The translations under genes were made by a program, and so were the position numbers. Shown here one piece after another: positions 7,106 to 29,100 of a stretch of DNA of 64,000 nt. The stretch lies in sequence record OZ196285.1, one strand, 5' to 3'. Each line of letters starts with the position of its first letter. Positions within the stretch are counted from its first letter, which is position 1. The notes beneath the pieces were generated by a model. The model was not told where the DNA came from and ran no database searches. It saw nothing but the letters and a program-made list of their open reading frames with translations.

Positions 7106-10027
7106 TTAATTAAACAGTTTACTGTATATTTTTTTGTACCACGGAGTTTCAAGTCGTTCAACTTTTTCATTAAGCTCCTTGATTGATTCTACTAACAAGC
7201 CAATCATGTTTCCGTAAGCTACAGATTTGATGCTATCGGGGTCGTTAGCGTCAACGTGTACCGCTTCAGGCAGAACTTTCTCAACTTCTTGAGCAATCAC
7301 ACCCGTTTCACGTCTCGTCTCGCTCTCGCTCATAGAACGCTTCTTATCGTACGTGTAGCCACTAAGCTGTTTGATCTTCTCTAGTGGATTTTCGATGCGC
7401 TCGATGTTGCTTTTCAGGCGAATATCAGAGTAAGCAGTTACGTTGCCAGTTGCAGTAAAGTGTCCTGCATCATCGAACGTAAATCGAGTTGTCGAACCGT
7501 CACGAACATACCAGTTACCGATGTCACTATTCAAGTCAGTGTACATGTGGGAGCCATTACAGAAGAACTCGACATCATCACTTGAACCGAAACGAAGAAT
7601 GTCATTATCTGCTAAGTCAATCGCAGTGCGAACACTCAACGTACCGTTCACCGTCATACTACCAGTTATCGTACCGCCAGTTAGCGATAAGTATCCCGCA
7701 CCGTTAATAGGTGCGAATCGTGCATCAGCTTCAGCTTCTGTGTAGTAACGACCATCATGTGTATGCGAATCGTTAGCAACTGCAACAGTGATCGAAGCGT
7801 TCGCTGAACCATCGAACGAGACTGAACCACTAGCATCACCTGCTAAACTGATTGTTCTTGCTGTTGCAAGCTTCGATGCGCTTGATGCGTTGCCAATGAA
7901 CGACGCTGCTGTTACCGATCCACGAAATTCCCAGTTGTTTGAGTTGTATTTGTTTCTAGCCGTCCAGTTATCATCAGAACCTGCTCGGTTAAACAGTGTG
8001 ATGTAGTCTGAGCCAGAGCCAGAGCCAGTCGGAGTACCGTCACCGTTGTACTCAAGACCACCACCATGAGTTGAAGACTGACCCACATAAATTCGACCAG
8101 TACCTTGCGACCCACCCATTGCTTGAATATTAGCCACGCCCGCATCGTCACAAATCACATTTAGTGTTGATGATGTGCCTGCATCGATAGTCATACTACC
8201 CGTCAGCGATCCACCCGTCAGCGGTAAGTATCCCGCACCATTAATAGGTGCGAATCGTGCATTAGCTTCTGCTTCTGTGTAGTAACGACCATCATGTGTA
8301 TGCGAATCGTTAGCAACTGCAACAGTCAAAGTCTTGTTCGCTGAACCATCAATTGAAACTGACCCACTAGCATCACCTGCTAAACTGATTGTTCTTGCTG
8401 TCGCCCATTTGCTTGCCGTCGTTGCGTTACCAGTCAATGCACCACTGAATTTTGTTGCAAAAACAGTCCCAGACGATCCTTCAAACTGAACACCAGTATG
8501 ACTATACATTAAGCCATTAACGTCAACAGTCATCGGGTATTTACCGCTGAACGTCGTTGTGATATCAACTCGATCTGCTAATGCTGCATGAGTTGCTTCG
8601 TTCACATCGACTGTGATACTCGCGTTAGCTGAACCGTCCCATGATACTGAGCCAGTTGCATCACCAGTAAGACTTAATGTTCTTGCAGTTGTCCATTTAT
8701 CAGCATTCGGGTGATAGTTGTCCATGAAAATACGCTGAGATGTTGCGTCGGACGTTGTATTACTCGTATTGTTTTTATACGCATAATGTAGTTTATCAAT
8801 GTTGCTAGTATCCGTCCATAATGAATGTCTGAACTTAGACCCCCCGTTATGACCCCACTGAATCCAGTTGATGAAATCATTACTAGGTGCCCCAGAAACA
8901 TTAGATGCCGACCCGGTTCTAAATTCGTCAGTTTGCGCGTTCCAGTCTGCGTTTAACGGGTCGATTCTAGTATGTAAGTGACTATCGTCTGCAACTACGA
9001 CATTGATACTTGCATTAGTTGATCCGTCAATCGAAACTGAACCACTAGCATCACCAGTAAGACTCAACGTTCTTGCAGTAGCCCATCGACTTGATGTTGA
9101 AGCATTACCACTTAATGCGCCGTATACCGTATTAATGTACGCACTACTAAACCTCCAAGAAGATGTACCCAAAACACTGCCACCAGAAGTGCCAGATTTA
9201 TAGGGAAGCAAACCGGATGCAGGTGTACAAATATAAGTATTTGCATTAGTCTTACCACGAATTTGATAATAAGACCCAGATGGGCTTAATGTATCACCCC
9301 GAGCATATCTAGTATCATGTGTATGGCTATCATTTGCAACTACAGTTGTAATCGTAGTAGTTTTATTCCCAGTGCCATCCACGCTCATTGATGCCGAACC
9401 CGTAACATCGCCCGTTAATGTAGTTGTTAATGTTCTCGCAGTCGTCCATTTATCAGCATTCGGGTGATAGTTGTCCGCAAACACGCGTTGCGTGCCACTT
9501 GCGTAGATGTTACCACCAACGACAATATGTAACGGGTGCGACGTTGAACTCGTGTCTTCGAAAAACAAGGCTTGACCCGACGTATTCGGCAGATTACCAT
9601 CAGTTATTTCGTGACGAATTCTCGCGTTCTGTGTTGAGTCGGATACGAAATTAATCGTTGCATCTATAGCTGTACTAGTCGATGTAAGCGACAAGAATGG
9701 AGAATTCCCGTATGCTTCAATTCCGTATTCAAGAACACGCAATTTGCTCCCTTTCAAGTCAAGAACGTTGCTTGAAGATGCATCGAAACGAGCGTCGTAA
9801 TCAGACGCGCCGCCTGAGATATGAAAGTCGATGTATCTACCGACTTCCATAACCCCGTTTGTTCCTATGACTGGAATCATTTCAGTATCTGGCGTTCCAT
9901 CAGTCCCGAAAAGACCGCCAGTCGCAACTACAGCACCGTTTAGCGTATTCAAGATCACATCGTTTAAAGACGTAACCCCTGTTACGTCTATACTACCGTA
10001 AACCGTAGTAGGGCCTAATTTAGCCAT
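7106..10027 (-). CDS. Distal tail fibre with five internal repeats and a C-terminal intramolecular chaperone
   Basis: Same repeat family and chaperone motifs as 3223-7035, but a different N-terminus. Confidence 0.88.
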   Translation of the reverse strand: MAKLGPTTVYGSIDVTGVTSLNDVILNTLNGAVVATGGLFGTDGTPDTEMIPVIGTNGVMEVGRYIDFHISGGASDYDARFDASSSNVLDLKGSKLRVLEYGIEAYGNSPFLSLTSTSTAIDATINFVSDSTQNARIRHEITDGNLPNTSGQALFFEDTSSTSHPLHIVVGGNIYASGTQRVFADNYHPNADKWTTARTLTTTLTGDVTGSASMSVDGTGNKTTTITTVVANDSHTHDTRYARGDTLSPSGSYYQIRGKTNANTYICTPASGLLPYKSGTSGGSVLGTSSWRFSSAYINTVYGALSGNASTSSRWATARTLSLTGDASGSVSIDGSTNASINVVVADDSHLHTRIDPLNADWNAQTDEFRTGSASNVSGAPSNDFINWIQWGHNGGSKFRHSLWTDTSNIDKLHYAYKNNTSNTTSDATSQRIFMDNYHPNADKWTTARTLSLTGDATGSVSWDGSANASITVDVNEATHAALADRVDITTTFSGKYPMTVDVNGLMYSHTGVQFEGSSGTVFATKFSGALTGNATTASKWATARTISLAGDASGSVSIDGSANKTLTVAVANDSHTHDGRYYTEAEANARFAPINGAGYLPLTGGSLTGSMTIDAGTSSTLNVICDDAGVANIQAMGGSQGTGRIYVGQSSTHGGGLEYNGDGTPTGSGSGSDYITLFNRAGSDDNWTARNKYNSNNWEFRGSVTAASFIGNASSASKLATARTISLAGDASGSVSFDGSANASITVAVANDSHTHDGRYYTEAEADARFAPINGAGYLSLTGGTITGSMTVNGTLSVRTAIDLADNDILRFGSSDDVEFFCNGSHMYTDLNSDIGNWYVRDGSTTRFTFDDAGHFTATGNVTAYSDIRLKSNIERIENPLEKIKQLSGYTYDKKRSMSESETRRETGVIAQEVEKVLPEAVHVDANDPDSIKSVAYGNMIGLLVESIKELNEKVERLETPWYKKIYSKLFN
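7372..7846. repeat. ~475-bp near-identical direct repeat, copy 2
   Basis: Matches 3501-3975. Confidence 0.85.
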
Positions 10028-10068: not shown

Positions 10069-13000
10069 CCTCGTTGAACTCAAACGTGTTCGTAGACCCA
10101 TCAGATTTAATTCGCGTTGCATTGTTTTCATACTCACCTAGTGTGTTGTAACAACTGACAATAGGCGTATGTTCAGCGCCTGCACACAACTCGGCAATCG
10201 AGGGTTGAGTCCCATCCATCACATCAACTCGCGGTCTATGATAATTCTGAATCGTGTTCGCATCAGTAGAATAATACAAAAAGCTTCGATGTGTATTGCT
10301 CGTCGAGCCCGCCTTGCTGCGAAAGTTGGATGATATATTGCCAATCTTCTCGCCATTGACGTTGTATATGCCATAATCGGTATATGTGTTTGTGTCAGTC
10401 GTACCCGCTGCATACAAATAAGCAACGACTAAAAACCACTCGTTGCCATTTGGCAAATTACCAGACGATATAAAGTATGGGTTGGTATTTGCAGACCCAC
10501 TGAGATTTTCAGTATGCGACCCACTACACCCCAAATACCAACTACCGTTGCCCGTAACTTCTCGTTGAATCCAATTTGTATATCGATGATGCTTGGTAGA
10601 ATCAATCGCGACTGTCTGACCGTACCATCCACCATCACTACTGCTTGTCCCGCGAGTCATACCTTGCCATACAACATCATGGTCACCCCACGGATTTTTC
10701 TTTATAGTTATCAAATTCTCAATAGGATCAGATGTGCCGAATCCGCCATCATCACCGATAACCCACGTCGAATAGTCCAACAACGAAGGCTCAAAATTCG
10801 TTTCAATCAGCTCGCCTGCATGAACAACTCCGTCACGAGTAACACCCGTGTCGTGGTAGCCGCCGGTCACGAATCGCGAATTTGTGTAGTAAACAATCGA
10901 CCCGCTTTCGTTATATCGCCTTCCCTCTGCGAATTGAGACAGCAATTCACCGTTCTTGATGCCCATGAATCCCCACGTTCCGCGTGATGCAATTGCGTGA
11001 TCCTCAGTAACCCCAAAATACTTCAAGAATGTTTCTCTAAGTTGACCGTTCTGAGTCGTACTAGCATCACATCGAGCAGCAGTCATCAACCATCCATCTT
11101 CCATATTGTCCATTGCATGAATCAGCCAGTCAGCAGCTTCTTGAGCAGAGTCAGCGATATCATTTGCAGACGCAACATAAACAGTGCCGTCGAACTCATA
11201 ATACTGAGTAGTCGTGCCCGAATATGTATCCAACGAACCGTAGCCGCGCAACGTCATGCTTTCGTCGTAAATACAGAAGCTAATGCCGCGACTACTAGAC
11301 TGATAACCTTGCTTAACGCCATTGATAAACGTACCGGTATTTCCTGATGAGCTACTGCGAATTTCGATTTCTAAATCGCCATCGCTATCCCAACCCTCAA
11401 CGAACTCAGACGCACAAAAAACACCCGTTTCAACAACAGACGCTCGGACTCTAGACAAACGATTGATCTTCTCTGCTGATAGCTCTGACGCATATACTCG
11501 AACATCAGATACGTGACCCTCATTCATCTTGCGATATTCGTAGCTACCACTAGCACCCGCATCGTAATTGATCATTAGTCGATACGCAGCGCCCGGGTTG
11601 GTATTTACGTTCTCGCCAGTTCCTTCAAGAACGCCATCGACGTATGTTTTGTAAACGCCATCAGCGTACGACATTGCAAGGTGATGCCAAACGCCATCAG
11701 AGACTTGACTCGTGCCCGTTGCAACTTGCTTGTCTGTACCAGTCGAGCTATCACCATACAAATGACATGCTAGTACGCCCCCTTCGATTTGCATCGAATT
11801 TAGAACATTGTTACCGGTTCTACCACCAAACAATAAGAATACAGCCGAATCGGTAGTTTTTACCCACAACGAGCGAGTAAACGCAGGCAATGTTGCTAGA
11901 TAGTCGTTCTTGAACTTAATTGAGTTGAAATGTCCATCAGCAGACGGTCGAATGTAATAACCACTGGCACCAACTGCTGCATCAGAACTCCATCCAGCGG
12001 TTGTCGAATCAAGATACGCATCGTTGCCATACCCCGAACGGTCGTAGACCGCATCAGATTGTATGTCTTGTGGTTCACGTGCCAACGTATCAGACTGAAC
12101 AGCAACAGAACGAGCAAATTTGTACCAGTATGAATTCCCATCACTCGCACCCCCAATTCGCGATGTCAATTTCAAAATATCAGACGAATCAGTCGTGCGA
12201 TGTGACTGAAACATGTATCCTGTTTTCGTTATGAATTCTTTCGTTCCTGATTTGGTTCCGTCACCAACACCCTCATTTTGATACGAAATGAAGTACAAAT
12301 GATCGCGATATGAGGGATCATTTGTGGCGATCAATTCTACACCAAATGTATATGGTGTATCTGATTTCATATCAGTCACATTGAGCGAGTTCGTGTACCA
12401 GCTACCCACATCACCTGTCGTAGTTACAGTAAACGTACCATCGTCATTATTCACAACAGAATTGCGATAATGATTCCCACTAGCGTGTCCATCGCTCAGA
12501 TTCAATCCGAACAGTGGAGCACCGCTCAGATGAACAATTTTCGCGTCTAAAATTTCATCCAATTCGAGGTCTGTGATGCAATGATCGTAAATTCGAACAT
12601 CATTCATTTTTCCATTAGGGCGATAACTCGAACTCGAACTATTCGTTACAGACCAGTTGAACAACTCAAGATATTCTTCAGTATATGCAAACGACGAATA
12701 CGGCTGAGTTTTTTCGATTACCCCGTCAACGAGAAGTTCAAGTTTTGTGCCGTCATAACGATAAGTTAAGTGACGCCACGCCCCGCGCAAATCACTAGTT
12801 CCGTAATAAGCGTTGTATGTTCGACCTGTACCACTCCCCGTGCTACACCCTATGTAAATCTCGCTACTATTGGTTCGCTTCATTAACCCAAGGCATGGGT
12901 TCGAATTCGCGACGTGATTATGTAGAGTTACCAGCCCATTCGCAGTATTCGTATGAGCACTACCTCCACTATAGAACCACGCTGTCATTGTAAATTCTTT

Positions 13001-15455: not shown

Positions 15456-15478
15456 AAAAAAGGCGGCATGAAGCCGCC
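15456..15478 (-). terminator. Terminator between the DUF2828 and RNase H-like genes
   Basis: GGCGGC-TTCAT-GCCGCC-TTTTT on the minus strand. Confidence 0.7.
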
Positions 15479-15487
15479 CCATTCTAG

Positions 15488-16936
15488 TTATACTGCGTAC
15501 CGGTCGATACCAACAGTCTTCATCATGATCTTCACTGGCTCAAGCTCGCCATCAAGTAAAGAAGTCAGGATAGATGGACTACAACCCGACACAAGTGCCG
15601 TACCTGCCTCACCCGTTTTCACTGGTACGTTGTCTAGACGACCGCGAATGTTCCAGAACGCTAGTTGCGGCATTTCGTAGCCCGCTGCTGCGTATTGAGC
15701 TTTGATAGCATCAAAGTTTGTTTCTGTGCGGCTTGGCCAACCACCACCGCATTTCGCAGTGTTGAATTCCATGTCAGACATGATCAACATCTTCGTAGGC
15801 ATTTCAGATTGTGGCAAGTTTGCACGCTGCGCACGCTCCAATAGCACTTCGAAACACTTCTGAATATCAGTGCTCATGTTCTCACCAGAACGACGCATGT
15901 TAGCAAGACGCGTTGACAGTGTATCACCAACAAGCTTGTGGAAATGTGGATCGCCTGAGAACGAAATGAACTGATCTTTGAAGATACCTTCGTTACGTTC
16001 AGCTACGTAGACACCAAGAGACATCGCTACGTCCATACAAGTTGTAACAGTGCCCTGTGAATAGCAGCTACCTTGTTCTGAGTTAATCGCACAATTCATT
16101 GAGCCAGACACATCAACAACAGGGATGATGCGCTCGTCAGACCCTTCCATGTAATTCGGAAGTGCTTTCCATTGCTGATCTGCTACACGTGAATCGCCCA
16201 TTCGTACGCTGCGAACAACGTCGTAAGGGAAGACTGCACCTGCATTGATCTTAGCTTCGCCTTTCTCAAGCTTGTTGATGTACTCACCGTAGTTCTCAGC
16301 CGCGTTACGACCGAATGCTTTCTGATAACGCGCAGACGCTACAGATGGCAACTTACCGAAGTCGATCTCGTTCCAGTTCTGTGAACACATTTTCTGTTCA
16401 ACAGTGTCAGACAGCGTAGAAATGACCTTACGCCATTGCTTCGATGTCACGCCAAGCGCCTTGATAGTGCGCTTAAACACGATACCGTTTTTACTCTTCT
16501 CACGAGGGAACCACTTCGCAGCCAGTGCGTTTTTGCCGTTCACGATTGCATTTGCCCATAGAGCAATTGCATCAGACTCAAGAGGAGTACCGAACGCAGT
16601 CACTAAGTCATCGAAACGACCTAATTCTGGCACCTTGTGCATTACAGCACGTGCAACGTCAGGGTTTTTCGCGATAAGTTCAGCGAAAATGCGACGGAAA
16701 GTACCGCGCTCACCTGCACCACCGCGCACGTCGCGAGACCATAGCAAGATACGTGTTGCTAGTTCAGGGTTTTCACCGTATGCGCGATTGAACGCATGTA
16801 CTGAATCTTTGTTACCGCGCATTGCTGCTACAGTAAAGAACAAGTTCAGACACTCGTTACCCGAAGTGCTGTGTGTAATTGCACCGTTTGCTGTACGTGC
16901 GTCGTTTGTGCTCATTGCGTTCATAAATGCTGACAT
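15488..16936 (-). CDS. DUF2828 TROVE-like/vWA protein (Ro60-related RNA-binding protein)
   Basis: T.NGA..H..S, RDVRGGAGER, GRFDDL, AAKW.PR and SVA..RY.KAF motifs; vWA MIDAS VVDVSGSM and MSDMEF. Start moved to 16936 (SD GAGGA). Confidence 0.9.
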   Translation of the reverse strand: MSAFMNAMSTNDARTANGAITHSTSGNECLNLFFTVAAMRGNKDSVHAFNRAYGENPELATRILLWSRDVRGGAGERGTFRRIFAELIAKNPDVARAVMHKVPELGRFDDLVTAFGTPLESDAIALWANAIVNGKNALAAKWFPREKSKNGIVFKRTIKALGVTSKQWRKVISTLSDTVEQKMCSQNWNEIDFGKLPSVASARYQKAFGRNAAENYGEYINKLEKGEAKINAGAVFPYDVVRSVRMGDSRVADQQWKALPNYMEGSDERIIPVVDVSGSMNCAINSEQGSCYSQGTVTTCMDVAMSLGVYVAERNEGIFKDQFISFSGDPHFHKLVGDTLSTRLANMRRSGENMSTDIQKCFEVLLERAQRANLPQSEMPTKMLIMSDMEFNTAKCGGGWPSRTETNFDAIKAQYAAAGYEMPQLAFWNIRGRLDNVPVKTGEAGTALVSGCSPSILTSLLDGELEPVKIMMKTVGIDRYAV

Positions 16937-16984
16937 TGTGTATTTCCTCTTAAATAATATGCTGTAAAATGTCTTATGCGTTGT

Positions 16985-17013
16985 ATTATACACACGTTTT
17001 TACGAGTGTAAAC
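16985..17013 (-). promoter_or_regulatory. Early promoter of the DUF2828 gene
   Basis: GTTTAC-17 bp-TATAAT, the T4 early consensus. Confidence 0.8.
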
Positions 17014-20982: not shown

Positions 20983-21059
20983 TGGTGCTCAACCCGAGAT
21001 TCGAACTCGGACGTTCTAGTGTTTGAAACTAGTGACTCTGCCAATTGGCCTAGTTGAGC
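20983..21059 (-). tRNA. tRNA-Leu(CAA), short variable loop
   Basis: Cloverleaf, loop TTCAAAC, CCA. Confidence 0.9.
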
Positions 21060-21065
21060 GATGTT

Positions 21066-21142
21066 TGGTACGCGTGGGCGGATTCGAACCGCCATCCCTG
21101 AGATTTTAAGCCTCATGCCTCTGCCAATTGGACCACACGCGC
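21066..21142 (-). tRNA. tRNA-Leu(TAA), short variable loop
   Basis: Cloverleaf, loop CTTAAAA, CCA. Confidence 0.92.
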
Positions 21143-22807: not shown

Positions 22808-23017
22808 TTATAACTTGACGACGTTAATAACTCTCCAAGAGAACAATCCGTCAAGATCTTCTGCCGACTCACCTGTACATGCAGAGAGTTCAGCAACAAC
22901 TTTCGCCTCGATTTCATCGACGCTTAGTGAATCATCTACGATATACGCTTCTTCGTTGTTATTACCACCGAACGCGCCATTAAAATCGTATTCACACCAT
23001 ACAGAAATGAATTTCAT
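22808..23017 (-). CDS. Acidic hypothetical protein
   Basis: Start moved to MKFISVW, because the longer ORF overlaps tRNA-Thr. Confidence 0.6.
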   Translation of the reverse strand: MKFISVWCEYDFNGAFGGNNNEEAYIVDDSLSVDEIEAKVVAELSACTGESAEDLDGLFSWRVINVVKL

Positions 23018-23041
23018 TATATATTCCAAAGTTGTAAAAAA

Positions 23042-23116
23042 TGGTGCACCCACTCAGACTCGAACTGAGATAGTCGGATTACAAAACCGATATAATTGCC
23101 TTTATATTATGGGTGC
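23042..23116 (-). tRNA. tRNA-Thr(TGT)
   Basis: Cloverleaf, CCA. Confidence 0.9.
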
Positions 23117-23119
23117 GTT

Positions 23120-23233
23120 ACTGAGTGTCGTTTATACCGCGTCTCCAAGACCTGAGCTACCAACTCAGCGTGAGATTCGAACTCACAACGTTTCTTGTAT
23201 CGAAAGAATTTAAAATTGCTGTAAACACTCAAT
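23120..23233 (-). ncRNA. Circularly permuted tRNA-mimic RNA (YrlA-like) with CAGCAA (element C)
   Basis: 9-bp closing helix ATTGAGTGT/ACACTCAGT, TTA-CAGCAA, canonical T arm GTGAG-TTCGAAT-CTCAC, then CTGAG/CTCAG and GTCT/AGAC hairpins; no anticodon arm and no CCA. Confidence 0.7.
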
Positions 23234-23239
23234 GGTATC

Positions 23240-23314
23240 TGGAAGGGCTAACAGGATTTGAACCCGTACTCCGAAAGTCAAAGTTTCGTATGCTACCAGT
23301 TACATCATAGCCCT
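23240..23314 (-). tRNA. tRNA-Gln(TTG)
   Basis: Cloverleaf, CCA. Confidence 0.92.
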
Positions 23315-23318
23315 ATTG

Positions 23319-23512
23319 TTTGTCAAGACATCTTACACGACGGCGTAAGTGAACGTTCTAATGGTTAGTTCAGAATCCACGTCATAATATTGATGCTATA
23401 TTCGCGCCACTATCTGCTGATAGATATGTTATGCATCATCTATGCAGACTCTTCTTGCGCTGTAAATTGCCTTCTTATGATATGAGACTGTCACTTCTCA
23501 AATCACGACAAA
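23319..23512 (-). ncRNA. ~195-nt multi-hairpin spacer RNA
   Basis: Closing TTTGTC/GACAAA plus four or more short hairpins; no ORF. Confidence 0.45.
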
Positions 23513-24305: not shown

Positions 24306-24382
24306 TGGATGCGTGAGAGTGGATTCGAACCACTGACCTCCGGCTTATGAGACCGACGAGCTGACCGCTGCTCTACTCCGCA
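24306..24382 (-). tRNA. tRNA-Met(CAT), initiator-like body
   Basis: D arm and variable loop resemble tRNA-fMet; one bulged base in the acceptor stem; CCA. Confidence 0.8.
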
Positions 24383-24965: not shown

Positions 24966-25040
24966 TGGTGCACCCTCTCGGAATCGAACCGAGCACTGTG
25001 GGACTTCACTCCACCGCTTTTCCTGATAAGCTAAGGGTAC
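24966..25040 (-). tRNA. tRNA-Phe(GAA)
   Basis: Cloverleaf, atypical loop GTGAAGT, CCA. Confidence 0.82.
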
Positions 25041-25048
25041 ATCTAATT

Positions 25049-25123
25049 TGGCGCCTCATGTAAGATTCGAACTTACGACTCCCGAGTTAACAGCTCGGCA
25101 CTCTACCACTGAGTTAATGAGGC
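25049..25123 (-). tRNA. tRNA-Asn(GTT)
   Basis: Cloverleaf, G73, CCA. Confidence 0.95.
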
Positions 25124-28800: not shown

Positions 28801-28923
28801 TGGTGGAGAGTAGTGGATTCGAACCACTGACCTAAAGACCCATTCGTTTTAATGTTTGCAGCATGAATGCTTTACAGAATTCTTTTAACATTCTTTTGCT
28901 CTACCAAACTGAGCTAACTCTCC
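28801..28923 (-). ncRNA. 123-nt tRNA-like RNA with an expanded anticodon domain carrying CTGCAA (element E)
   Basis: Perfect acceptor GGAGAGT/ACTCTCC-A-CCA, canonical D and T arms, AAAGA/TCTTT stem enclosing about 53 nt. Confidence 0.8.
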
Positions 28924-28935
28924 AGAAAAAACACA

Positions 28936-29057
28936 TTGATGCGGGTGCAGGATTCGAACCTGCGTCACGATCTTATGAATGATATGCGATTTGATTGCTG
29001 AATACAAGTTTGTCAACTTGCGTTTGCTACGTGTGCTAACCACTACACCAACCCGCA
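28936..29057 (-). ncRNA. 122-nt tRNA-like RNA with an expanded anticodon domain carrying CAGCAA (element F)
   Basis: TGCGGGT/ACCCGCA acceptor, D-like arm, T arm GCAGG-TTCGAAT-CCTGC; ends CAA rather than CCA. Confidence 0.8.
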
Positions 29058-29100
29058 TCAATGTGTTCTTGTGATGCTACGAATCAACGTAGCATCCGAA

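Follow-up and report, generated by a model that had tools for sequence, protein, structure and literature searches.

We analysed a 64-kb stretch of DNA (the window, to which all coordinates given without another source refer) that is identical to Vibrio phage F86 (OZ196285.1, 228 kb), a T4-like member of the Straboviridae with relatives KVP40, nt-1 and 6E35.1a. In its tRNA cluster, the 123-nt spacer between tRNA-Gln and tRNA-Thr has a real and conserved structure, in which a closing helix and an adjacent single-stranded motif, UUACAGCAA, enclose a permuted tRNA-like module. Judged by signature and covariance-model searches, this F86 element is a member of a family of Y-like RNAs linked to genes for DUF2828 proteins, and the DUF2828 protein of F86 is predicted to share the fold of Ro60. 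Such a large phage RNA family beside a Ro60-like gene is apparently undescribed: no description of RNAs with the CAGCAA frame, of their short and tRNA-like forms, or of a likeness to dictyostelid Class I RNAs was found in Rfam 15 or in the searchable literature on DUF2828, the motif, and Y RNAs in T4-like phages. We consider that the spacer probably gives rise to a stable non-coding RNA of the Y RNA kind, released from the tRNA cluster and bound by the DUF2828 protein, with the tRNA-like module engaging a partner.

A conserved, permuted tRNA-like structure in the tRNA-Gln/tRNA-Thr spacer

The tRNA cluster of the window lies on the minus strand at ~20.9-28.9 kb and contains 25-27 tRNA genes according to ARAGORN and the Rfam tRNA model. 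A preliminary description, made from the sequence alone, had singled out 23120-23233 as a permuted tRNA mimic that tRNA scanners would overlook. Consistent with this, neither ARAGORN nor the Rfam tRNA model (E ≤ 10) calls the spacer, which lacks the standard-order cloverleaf of a tRNA (RF00005), and an Rfam search at E ≤ 10 returned nothing over the element beyond the flanking tRNAs and noise. All parts that had been listed are present base for base on the minus strand, and the coordinates 23120-23233 are exactly the outermost pairs of the closing helix, which in F86 has 10 pairs. In transcript order, with the evidence in parentheses (MFE, minimum free energy; R2, a covariance model introduced below), the features are:

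23240-23314, minus strand: tRNA-Gln(UUG), CCA encoded, upstream flank of the candidate RNA
23117-23239, minus strand: candidate RNA, 123 nt, the entire spacer between tRNA-Gln and tRNA-Thr
23224-23233, minus strand: 5' strand of the closing helix, AUUGAGUGUU, with conserved core GAGUGUU (MFE fold, alifold consensus)
23216-23224, minus strand: single-stranded motif UUACAGCAA beside the helix, proposed protein-recognition site (family signature)
23192-23208, minus strand: V (variable-arm-like) hairpin, UUCUU-UCGAUAC-AAGAA (MFE fold, consensus)
23170-23186, minus strand: T arm with canonical T loop, GUGAG-UUCGAAU-CUCAC (sequence, covariation)
23152-23168, minus strand: hairpin 2, the acceptor-like closed stem (AS), CUGAG-UUGGUAG-CUCAG (covariation, R2 alignment)
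23141-23151, minus strand: hairpin 3, reduced and D-like, GUCU-UGG-AGAC (consensus, R2 alignment)
23130-23140, minus strand: 3' linker GCGGUAUAAAC; the family consensus is about GGYCAA plus an A-rich run (alignments)
23120-23129, minus strand: 3' strand of the closing helix, GACACUCAGU (MFE fold, alifold consensus)
23042-23116, minus strand: tRNA-Thr(UGU), downstream flank of the candidate RNA

The first 9 nt of the spacer are a leader, GAUACCAUU; in F86, its three 3'-most bases (A7-U9) already form part of the closing helix. The leader is followed by the helix strand GAGUGUU, by UUACAGCAA, the first U of which is also the last helix base, and by an A/U linker; ACGUU lies between the V hairpin and the T arm, and a single base, G 23169, separates the T arm from the AS stem. 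The 3' end consists of GCGGUAUAAAC, the helix strand GACACUC and AGUAAC. Two of the 10 pairs of the closing helix (23224-23233 with 23120-23129) are G-U, and its core, GAGUGUU/RACACUC, is kept among relatives. The RNAfold MFE structure of the spacer has the same layout; its energy is -31.2 kcal/mol (z = -1.88), and 11 of 200 shuffles fold as stably. The permuted order that had been claimed, with the T arm ahead of the acceptor-like and D-like arms, thus appears in the MFE fold, and it recurs in the alifold consensus and in the R2 alignment.

A BLAST search found 41 records of KVP40-like phages in which this spacer lies between the same tRNA pair, at ~70-91% identity; identity to F86 is ~90% in the 6E35.1a/D48x group, 75% in nt-1 and ~70% in KVP40, VH7D, VS1, V09 and 1.081.O. 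We tested covariation on nine representative spacers aligned over their full length. With the proposed structure, 94.2% of the cells pair, versus 45-57% when the partners are slid by 1-3 columns, and two-sided changes occur at seven pairs, a number matched by none of 500 shuffles. Two pairs of the T stem are changed on both sides, and one pair shows UA, CG, GU and AU. In the AS stem, four of the five pairs are changed on both sides while the loop, UUGGUAK, is invariant; the 5' strand of this hairpin reads CUGAG, CAGAG, UAGAG, CAGUG or GUGC, and its complement always matches. The V hairpin becomes UUCGU/ACGAA in phage 1.081.O, the loop of the D-like hairpin retains GG in every relative, and the closing helix shows no variation inside the KVP40 group. 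The invariant blocks of the nine spacers are GAGUGUUU, CAGCAA, the T loop GUUCGAnUC, the loop UUGGUA, CGC and ACACUCAG. We conclude that the structure of the spacer is real and conserved.

The leader could also form a pseudoknot with the AS loop. The conserved AAUACC of the leader, just 5' of the closing helix, and the GGUAU of that loop, itself invariant, are complementary (23234-23238 with 23157-23161, minus strand), with 5 bp in KVP40 and 4 bp in F86 and a G-U pair where the leader has U; the changes at this pairing are one-sided only.

A family of helix-and-motif RNAs linked to DUF2828 genes

The preliminary description had listed UUACAGCAA without interpreting it. The closing helix together with UUACAGCAA is nevertheless what defines an RNA family that extends well beyond the KVP40 group. 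We took 80 viral contigs whose DUF2828 proteins are 44-50% identical to that of F86 and searched them with R1, a covariance model built from nine KVP40-group spacers. (Labels such as L021, L139 and L159 denote phage or viral contigs; L209 is HY02 and L210 is T4.) The F86 element itself scores 127.7 bits with R1, a value to be read in light of R1 having been built from its own group. R1 gave 65 matches at E ≤ 10 across the 80 contigs, and each of them shares the strand of its DUF2828 gene. The best five have E values of 2.6e-5 to 4.5e-3 and none is a tRNA, although one starts abutting a tRNA-Ile. The family members have a common frame: AAAG, a 6-7-bp helix strand starting from G, (U)U(A/U)C(A/C)GCAA, an A-rich linker, a variable interior, the complementary strand, and UG or AG.

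From this frame we formulated a strict signature, in which an end-joining helix of at least 6 bp (5' G/A) is followed at once by [AUG]U[AUG]C[AC]GCA[AG], and the 3' strand is followed by NG. Counted over the 80 loci, it has 93 occurrences on the DUF2828 strand, none on the opposite strand, and 0-2 in shuffles; because it was refined on the loci where it was counted, the asymmetry and the shuffles exclude chance but not selection. At least one copy is present in 61 of the 80 loci, and in 42 a copy lies less than 500 nt from the gene, usually just past its stop codon. By comparison, 119 other viral contigs contain 12 chance-looking matches in 2 Mb (~6 per Mb of strand). The F86 element has the strict signature, as GAGUGU followed by UUACAGCAA and, at the other end, ACACUC followed by AG, and is the sole convincing strict match in the window. 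Family-wide, the sequence of the helix is free to differ while its pairing is retained. The constant parts of the family are the terminal helix and the adjacent motif, and nothing else.

A scan for a T arm followed by UUGGUA (GTTCGANTCN{8,12}TTGGTA) returned mostly chance matches or tRNAs, R1 matches in L088, L051 and L082 were real tRNAs, and the only true relative was L021, a contig reached independently in this way that holds two clear signature copies and also encodes DUF2828. With a sequence-only nhmmer profile of the long forms described below, tandem-tRNA junctions dominate and the F86 element ranks sixth, so that structure-aware models were needed. An alignment of 15 long forms by MAFFT was too heterogeneous to serve as the base of such a model, and a subset of eight, from five unrelated contigs and with the KVP40 group excluded, was taken instead for the covariance model R2. 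In the 64-kb window, R2 ranks 23117-23234 (minus strand) first, with 37.5 bits and E ~1e-4, and it scores the orthologous spacers of 1.081.O, VH7D, nt-1, KVP40 and VS1 at 25.8-33.9 bits. The F86 element also shares genome and strand with a DUF2828 gene.

Short, long and third cargo types

Most copies of the family are 45-65 nt long with an A-rich, unstructured middle, and in many phage contigs such short copies directly follow the DUF2828 gene. At least 15 copies are 95-140 nt long and hold a T loop. The interior of these long forms runs, in order, through a V hairpin in some cases, a T arm, usually an AS stem (absent from some), UA plus a canonical D arm (for example UA-GCUC-AGUUGGUA-GAGC), and GGYCAA plus an A-rich run. 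With its U8-A9 and its T-AS-D order, this interior follows the layout that Chen et al. give for YrlA (PMC4201824). A third type has the same helix-and-motif frame around a different block. Examples of the short and third types are:

L139 11443-11503, L181 11443-11506 and L152 2076-2146: short copies, from the set in L129-L208, with a 6-bp stem, UUACAGCAA, an A-rich middle, the closing stem strand, and UG or AG
L021 150-279, L159 3134-3240 and L203 9702-9794: third cargo type, with the conserved block GAACCUUUCUGGAGGGGAAAG(C/U)AAAAACUCGCCAA and no T loop

Comparison with the long forms clarifies the arms of the F86 element. The preliminary description had called the stem closed by TTGGTAG acceptor-like, and R2 supports this assignment by aligning hairpin 2 with the AS helix and, likewise, hairpin 3 with the D arm. 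We considered hairpin 2 as a D arm, given its D-loop-like UUGGUAG, and dropped this in favor of AS because R2 aligns it there, the T arm adjoins it, and L150 and L166 provide a parallel, with UUGGYAA loops on their AS stems and a separate canonical D arm afterwards. In L159, a GUC...GAC D arm is followed by GCGGUCAUA, and the F86 stretch ...GUCUUGGAGAC-GCGGUAUAAAC resembles ...GUCAAGUGGUAAAGAC-AGCGGUCAUACUAAAAAG of L159, which fits the R2 parse. We also rejected an anticodon-arm reading of the V hairpin (GAU in F86), since its loop varies among relatives both in length (6-8 nt) and in sequence. A permuted tRNA gene that yields a working tRNA was rejected as well, there being no anticodon loop, 7-bp acceptor or CCA. 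The KVP40-group version keeps intact a tRNA "top half", with the T arm stacked on an acceptor-like closed stem of 5 bp. The D arm of the KVP40 group is reduced to a 3-5-nt loop, and U8-A9 is absent; in F86, this arm has 4 bp and a 3-nt loop instead of one of 7-11 nt.

Contig L169, which has a DUF2828 gene and a tRNA array, contains a tmRNA at 8605-9054 (plus strand; Rfam 75.4 bits) and, at 11844-12536, at least four CAGCAA-frame RNAs in a row. Tandem-tRNA junctions (21018-21108 and 25016-25089 in the window, 3083-3438 in L210) give weak scores with the long-form models; the order across such a junction is T arm, acceptor 3' strand, spacer, acceptor 5' strand, D arm. This likeness suggests that permuted tRNA mimics of the long-form kind could have arisen from tandem-tRNA junctions.

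The DUF2828 protein has a predicted Ro60-like fold

The preliminary description had also named DUF2828 as a possible partner of the RNA, and such a gene does lie on the same strand, 6.1 kb downstream of the element. A Pfam scan of the large open reading frames (ORFs) of the window identified 15488-16993 (minus strand) as DUF2828 (2e-27) and DUF7788 (1.5e-43), these being the only Pfam domains in this ORF, with no TROVE domain. The protein is likely 481 amino acids (aa) long, because its homologues begin ~20 codons into the ORF:

15488-16933, minus strand: DUF2828 + DUF7788 gene, ~481 aa (mechanical ORF to 16993), proposed partner of the RNA
15460-15480, minus strand: terminator-like hairpin directly past the DUF2828 gene (sequence)

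We modeled the protein with AlphaFold (pLDDT 80.5, pTM 0.81) and compared the model with the PDB using Foldseek. The top 11 matches are all Ro60/Rsr/TROVE proteins, aligned over the full length of the model (~510-590 aligned columns, E 6e-9 to 3e-5, TM scores 0.45-0.61), and below them are only isolated vWA domains. The best match is the Ro60 of Thermus phage phiLo (E = 6e-9), and the others include Xenopus and human Ro60 and D. radiodurans Rsr. The MIDAS motif, DVSGSM, is invariant in an alignment of 31 DUF2828 homologues. According to the structural model, the F86 DUF2828 protein is a Ro60-like ring plus vWA domain, with a HEAT-repeat ring, a C-terminal vWA domain and a MIDAS.

DUF2828 proteins are widespread. 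The protein collection searched holds more than 6,700 homologues, and thousands of metagenomic contigs encode such proteins. A tblastn search detected them in at least 710 phage records; the genera are many, with Felixounavirus, KVP40-like phages and other T4-like ones represented, as are phages that infect Listeria, Staphylococcus, Campylobacter and mycobacteria. In KVP40, VH7D and VS1, the distance from RNA to gene and their orientation are similar to those in F86. The eukaryotic DUF2828/DUF7788 proteins come from land plants, Mortierella/Podila, some ascomycetes and Coccomyxa and have 620-830 aa, and one cyanobacterial DUF2828 + DUF7788 protein has 734 aa. The F86 record annotates its DUF2828 protein as "RNA-binding protein", and several database entries use this name or "Ro-like RNA binding protein"; among the entries for these longer proteins, some are named after mimivirus L728, and one from wheat is called "TROVE domain-containing protein".

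Relation to YrlA and to other phage Ro60 systems

YrlA (Rfam RF02553) is a bacterial Y RNA that mimics tRNA and is bound by Rsr/Ro60 (PMC4201824; 10.1101/312249); it carries pseudouridine 55 and dihydrouridine, and its T and D arms are nearly invariant, with the capacity for tRNA tertiary contacts. The element had been read earlier as YrlA-like, and the layout supports this reading: in both RNAs, an end stem encloses the permuted series of V hairpin, T arm, closed acceptor-like stem and D arm, and both are encoded on the strand of a gene for a Ro60-fold protein, with YrlA also found in phages. The element does not qualify as a YrlA member, because there is no model match, no GNCGAA motif and no canonical TROVE partner. 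The Infernal search with the Rfam YrlA model, which the preliminary description had proposed as a check, found no match at E ≤ 10 in 23000-23350. The YrlA motif GNCGAA(N0-1)G, sought in the 5' part of the F86 element (GAUACCAUUGAGUGUUUACAGCAA), is absent there, and the sole CGAA is in the T loop. RF02553 does match long relatives in L145, L169 and L185 with 30-42 bits (E 6e-6 to 2e-2), below its gathering score of 69, and gives no match for the long form of HY02.

Further differences separate the two RNAs. Where YrlA has GNCGAA(N)G, the proposed Rsr site (PMC4201824), the F86 family has UU(A/U)C(A/C)GCAA, and unlike in YrlA the stem of the family is only 6-10 bp long. The gene of the proposed F86 partner is DUF2828/DUF7788 rather than Pfam TROVE, and is 6 kb distant as opposed to within ~4 kb for YrlA. 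Of the tRNA-like arms, the T arm with its UUCGAAU loop is canonical and the D arm, GUCU-UGG-AGAC, keeps GG; in the KVP40 group, however, the invariant part is the AS loop and not the D arm, which is reduced and without U8-A9, unlike in YrlA. The F86 element is YrlA-like in architecture and not a YrlA member.

Phage Ro60 homologues with Y-like RNAs are already known from mycobacteriophages and phiLo, and the Ro-likeness of DUF2828 is implicit in annotations. According to the phiLo report (PMC12135203; PDB 9KOP, 9L5Y), the Ro60 of this Thermus phage is encoded with adjacent Yrl1/Yrl2 and forms complexes with host PNPase. Thus phiLo, like F86, has a Ro60-fold protein and Y-like RNAs in its vicinity, and its protein is the closest structural match of the F86 protein. 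In contrast to F86, phiLo encodes a recognised TROVE protein and RNAs with a CGAA motif, and the part of the report consulted describes neither a tRNA-like module nor CAGCAA.

In Felixounavirus Bas63, the Ro60-like gp130 counters the Ppl defence, according to a preprint (10.1101/2024.10.10.617714) whose authors speculate that some downstream "tRNAs" are Y RNAs. The gp130 gene is directly upstream of a tRNA array, and no RNA was identified in that work. From Felixounavirus matches at 43% identity, we infer that gp130 is a DUF2828 orthologue. HY02, an E. coli Felixounavirus, has its tRNA array directly after the DUF2828 gene, with family RNAs interspersed:

L209 8713-8787, 8880-8941 and 9187-9256: HY02 short forms, three copies inside the tRNA array
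L209 9271-9404: HY02 tRNA-like long form (R2 55.4 bits, E = 1e-8)

All four share the helix AGACCR/YGGUCU, and Rfam assigns none of them to a family, the short forms giving sub-threshold RF01414 matches only. These RNAs are concrete candidates for the Y RNAs at which the Bas63 authors guessed.

The setting of the F86 element also recalls T4 rnaC/rnaD (species 1 and 2), small stable RNAs at the end of the tRNA cluster that are processed with tRNAs. We rejected them as homologues, as neither has an R2 match; an R2 search of the T4 tRNA region gave no RNA with closing helix and motif, and T4 is not among the DUF2828 tblastn matches listed. T4 rnaD (L210 2054-2172, minus strand) does contain CAUCACAGCAG near its 3' end, similar to the Class I motif variant of A. 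subglobosum (see below). This is probably chance, as there is no closing helix in the family register and no model match.

Resemblance to dictyostelid Class I RNAs

The literature on Class I RNAs was consulted because the phage short forms gave weak matches to Dicty_Class_I_RNA (RF01414), of 24-31 bits where the gathering score is 41.5; for ten loci that carry short forms, RF01414 gave no match at E ≤ 1. Class I RNAs (RF01414; Kjellin et al. 2021, PMC7919456) are ~60 nt long (42-65) with a 6-bp terminal stem that covaries freely except for an invariant first G. An 11-nt motif adjoins the 5' strand, with U3, C6, C9, A10 and A11 nearly invariant, and is followed by a variable middle; the end is CUG(U), the C of which pairs with the first G, as in GUUGAC-CUUACAGCAA-...-GUCAAC-UG (PMC7919456). 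They are transcribed from DUSE promoters of their own and, by that report, occur in Dictyostelia alone (PMC7919456). The phage short forms fit this description in length, stem, motif and end: their stem starts with G, (CC)UUACAGCAA directly follows the 5' strand, the middle is A-rich and variable, and the end is C-UG. To approach the likeness from the other side, we built the model R3 from 15 amoeba (dictyostelid) sequences only. In the phage loci, R3 has 33 matches at E ≤ 1 (best 6e-4), all 33 on the DUF2828 strand and most of them right past the gene.

The F86 element itself shares with Class I the stem and the motif residues U3, C6, C9, A10 and A11, its UUACAGCAA matching the core of the Class I motif CCUUACAGCAA; its end is C-AG, where Class I has CUG(U). 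It differs from Class I in its length of ~123 nt and in having a ~95-nt tRNA-like module in place of the variable middle, and it is not a Class I RNA by model, with no RF01414 match at E ≤ 10 and no R3 match.

It is possible, although we hold it to be rather doubtful, that the helix with UUACAGCAA is the handle of an ancient DUF2828 (Ro60-fold) ribonucleoprotein (RNP) extending from phages to eukaryotes, with Class I RNAs as its eukaryotic members; the phage RNAs would then be modular, carrying cargo (a tRNA mimic, for instance) in place of the variable middle, with the F86 element as an example. This possibility fits the presence of DUF2828/DUF7788 in plants, fungi and green algae and an Arabidopsis candidate, in the supplement of the Class I paper, with a perfect stem-AUUACAGCAA-stem-CUG frame (PMC7919456). 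A DUF2828 search with a lengthened query found plant, fungal and algal homologues and none from Dictyostelium. Of the proteins connected with Class I RNAs there, the RRM protein Rnp1A/CIBP binds DdR-21, a Class I RNA, directly, and DDB_G0281243, which has no known function, is a second protein pulled down with Class I RNA. The shared frame of phage and Class I RNAs may reflect common descent, horizontal transfer or convergence.

A proposed ribonucleoprotein and alternative explanations

We propose that the RNA would be transcribed as part of the polycistronic tRNA cluster and freed by maturation of the flanking tRNAs: the RNase P cut at the 5' end of tRNA-Thr would set its 3' end, and 3' maturation or trimming of tRNA-Gln its 5' end. 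As sequence, covariation and model searches show, the ends pair as a 7-10-bp helix followed by the single-stranded UUACAGCAA, around a permuted tRNA-like interior of V hairpin, T arm, AS stacked on the T arm, and reduced D hairpin. From genomic linkage only, we infer that the phage's own DUF2828 protein binds the RNA and uses helix and motif as its handle. More speculatively, the tRNA-like module might present the tRNA "top half" to a tRNA-recognising partner. Candidates for this partner are an exoribonuclease, for example PNPase by analogy with the Ro60/Y RNA/PNPase complexes, and, alternatively, a host tRNA-targeting or other defence factor; the RNP might help the phage to manage RNA decay or repair, or to evade defence.

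Several points weigh against this proposal. The F86 copy is 6 kb from the gene and within the tRNA cluster, whereas most copies abut the gene, and the statistics of the signature come from the loci on which it was refined. The single-sequence folding energy of the F86 spacer is modest evidence taken alone. A full L-shaped tRNA fold is doubtful because the D arm is degenerate, and the YrlA model fails to match the element. The relation of DUF2828 to Ro60 rests on the predicted fold because the sequence match is insignificant, the best PDB sequence or profile hit having E = 0.24 (phiLo TROVE). Lastly, the direct binder of a Class I RNA is an RRM protein and not Ro60-like.

This last point bears on a different explanation, in which the element is a functional RNA of the family but its helix and UUACAGCAA are read by another RNA-binding protein of host or phage, of the RRM type for instance, or act by base pairing, with the linkage to DUF2828 reflecting a shared pathway. 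Besides the precedent of Rnp1A/CIBP and DdR-21 in Dictyostelium, the canonical Ro60 sites GGUCCGA and GNCGAA are absent from the F86 element, and linkage alone cannot prove contact. However, the adjacency of RNA and gene is tight and strand-specific, with a copy within 500 nt of the gene in 42 of the 80 loci; the same pattern of adjacency identified YrlA as the Rsr partner (PMC4201824), and phiLo Ro60 binds its adjacent Y-like RNAs (PMC12135203). No conserved second RNA-binding gene was noticed in the loci, although no systematic search for one was made. We regard another binder as unlikely, while giving it the most weight among the alternatives. The position of the element between two tRNAs, with short flanks, could also point to a cis-acting processing element, a tRNA-like minihelix that guides RNase P, RNase Z or RNase E to correct maturation of the neighbouring tRNAs, as opposed to a trans-acting part of an RNP. 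RNase P, like other tRNA enzymes, recognises a T arm with an acceptor-like helix as its unit, it cuts M. smegmatis YrlA (PMC4201824), and family members are interspersed with tRNAs in HY02 and several contigs. Yet the AS helix has 5 bp and not 7, too short for RNase P per Chen et al. (PMC4201824), most tRNA pairs in the F86 cluster do without such an element, and most members of the family are ~55 nt long without any tRNA-like part and lie past the DUF2828 stop codon, often with no tRNA nearby. A processing role is therefore improbable.

Finally, the element might be a decayed tRNA, or the relic of a tandem-tRNA junction, that has no function and persists via the conserved tRNA cluster. Its 5' half can be read as acceptor strand, U8, anticodon-like arm, 5-nt variable loop and T arm; tandem junctions yield the order of T arm, acceptor strands and D arm and are caught by both the sequence profile and R2; and several pseudo-tRNAs are annotated in KVP40-type phages. 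A relic is nonetheless highly improbable in view of the compensatory changes that keep the non-tRNA hairpins, the invariance of motif and AS loop across genera, and the recurrence of the helix-and-motif frame by DUF2828 genes of unrelated phages, with or without tRNA parts. A junction origin may explain the source of the family but not the retention of the element. None of these three alternatives explains the family-wide pattern as well as a Y-like RNP with the DUF2828 protein.

Other tRNA-like RNAs in the window

A second odd tRNA-like RNA is found at 28930-29060 (minus strand). Its outer stem of 13 bp, ACAUUGAUGCGGG/CCCGCAUCAAUGU, is perfect and is followed by a U run. Inside it come a normal D arm, the hairpin CAAGUU-GACAA-AACUUG followed by UAUUCAGCAA (the family motif), and then, after a linker, a T arm. 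This is the arm order of a standard tRNA, but with a replacement for the anticodon arm. Both the KVP40 group and Synechococcus phage BUCT-ZZ01 conserve the RNA, and at this place KVP40 has annotated pseudo-tRNAs. It may be another ligand of the Ro60-like protein.

Its neighbour at 28804-28923 (minus strand), conserved together with it, scores 57.6 bits with the Rfam tRNA model over 120 nt and is not called by ARAGORN; it has a complete cloverleaf, a CCA end, and an insertion of ~48 nt in the anticodon loop (...GCUGCAAACAUUAAAAC...). A tRNA-like gene at 24310-24381 (minus strand), with a CAU anticodon and acceptor mismatches, scores 53.5 bits with Rfam and likewise has no ARAGORN call. The CAGCAA upstream of it was rejected as a family motif, being the end of a small ORF and a coincidence.

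Implications

DUF2828 proteins have had no described RNA partner, and an RNA family with a simple signature supplies them with a testable ligand. The family explains unannotated gaps and "pseudo-tRNAs" in phage tRNA clusters, and it offers a way into the anti-defence role reported for the Ro60-like gp130 of Bas63. It would also extend tRNA mimicry by Y RNAs to a second protein lineage. In the amoebae, the shared frame makes testable a 20-year-old question, namely what the abundant dictyostelid Class I RNAs bind and do. If the amoeba link is true, Class I RNAs, published as unique to social amoebae, would be eukaryotic members of a DUF2828 RNP.

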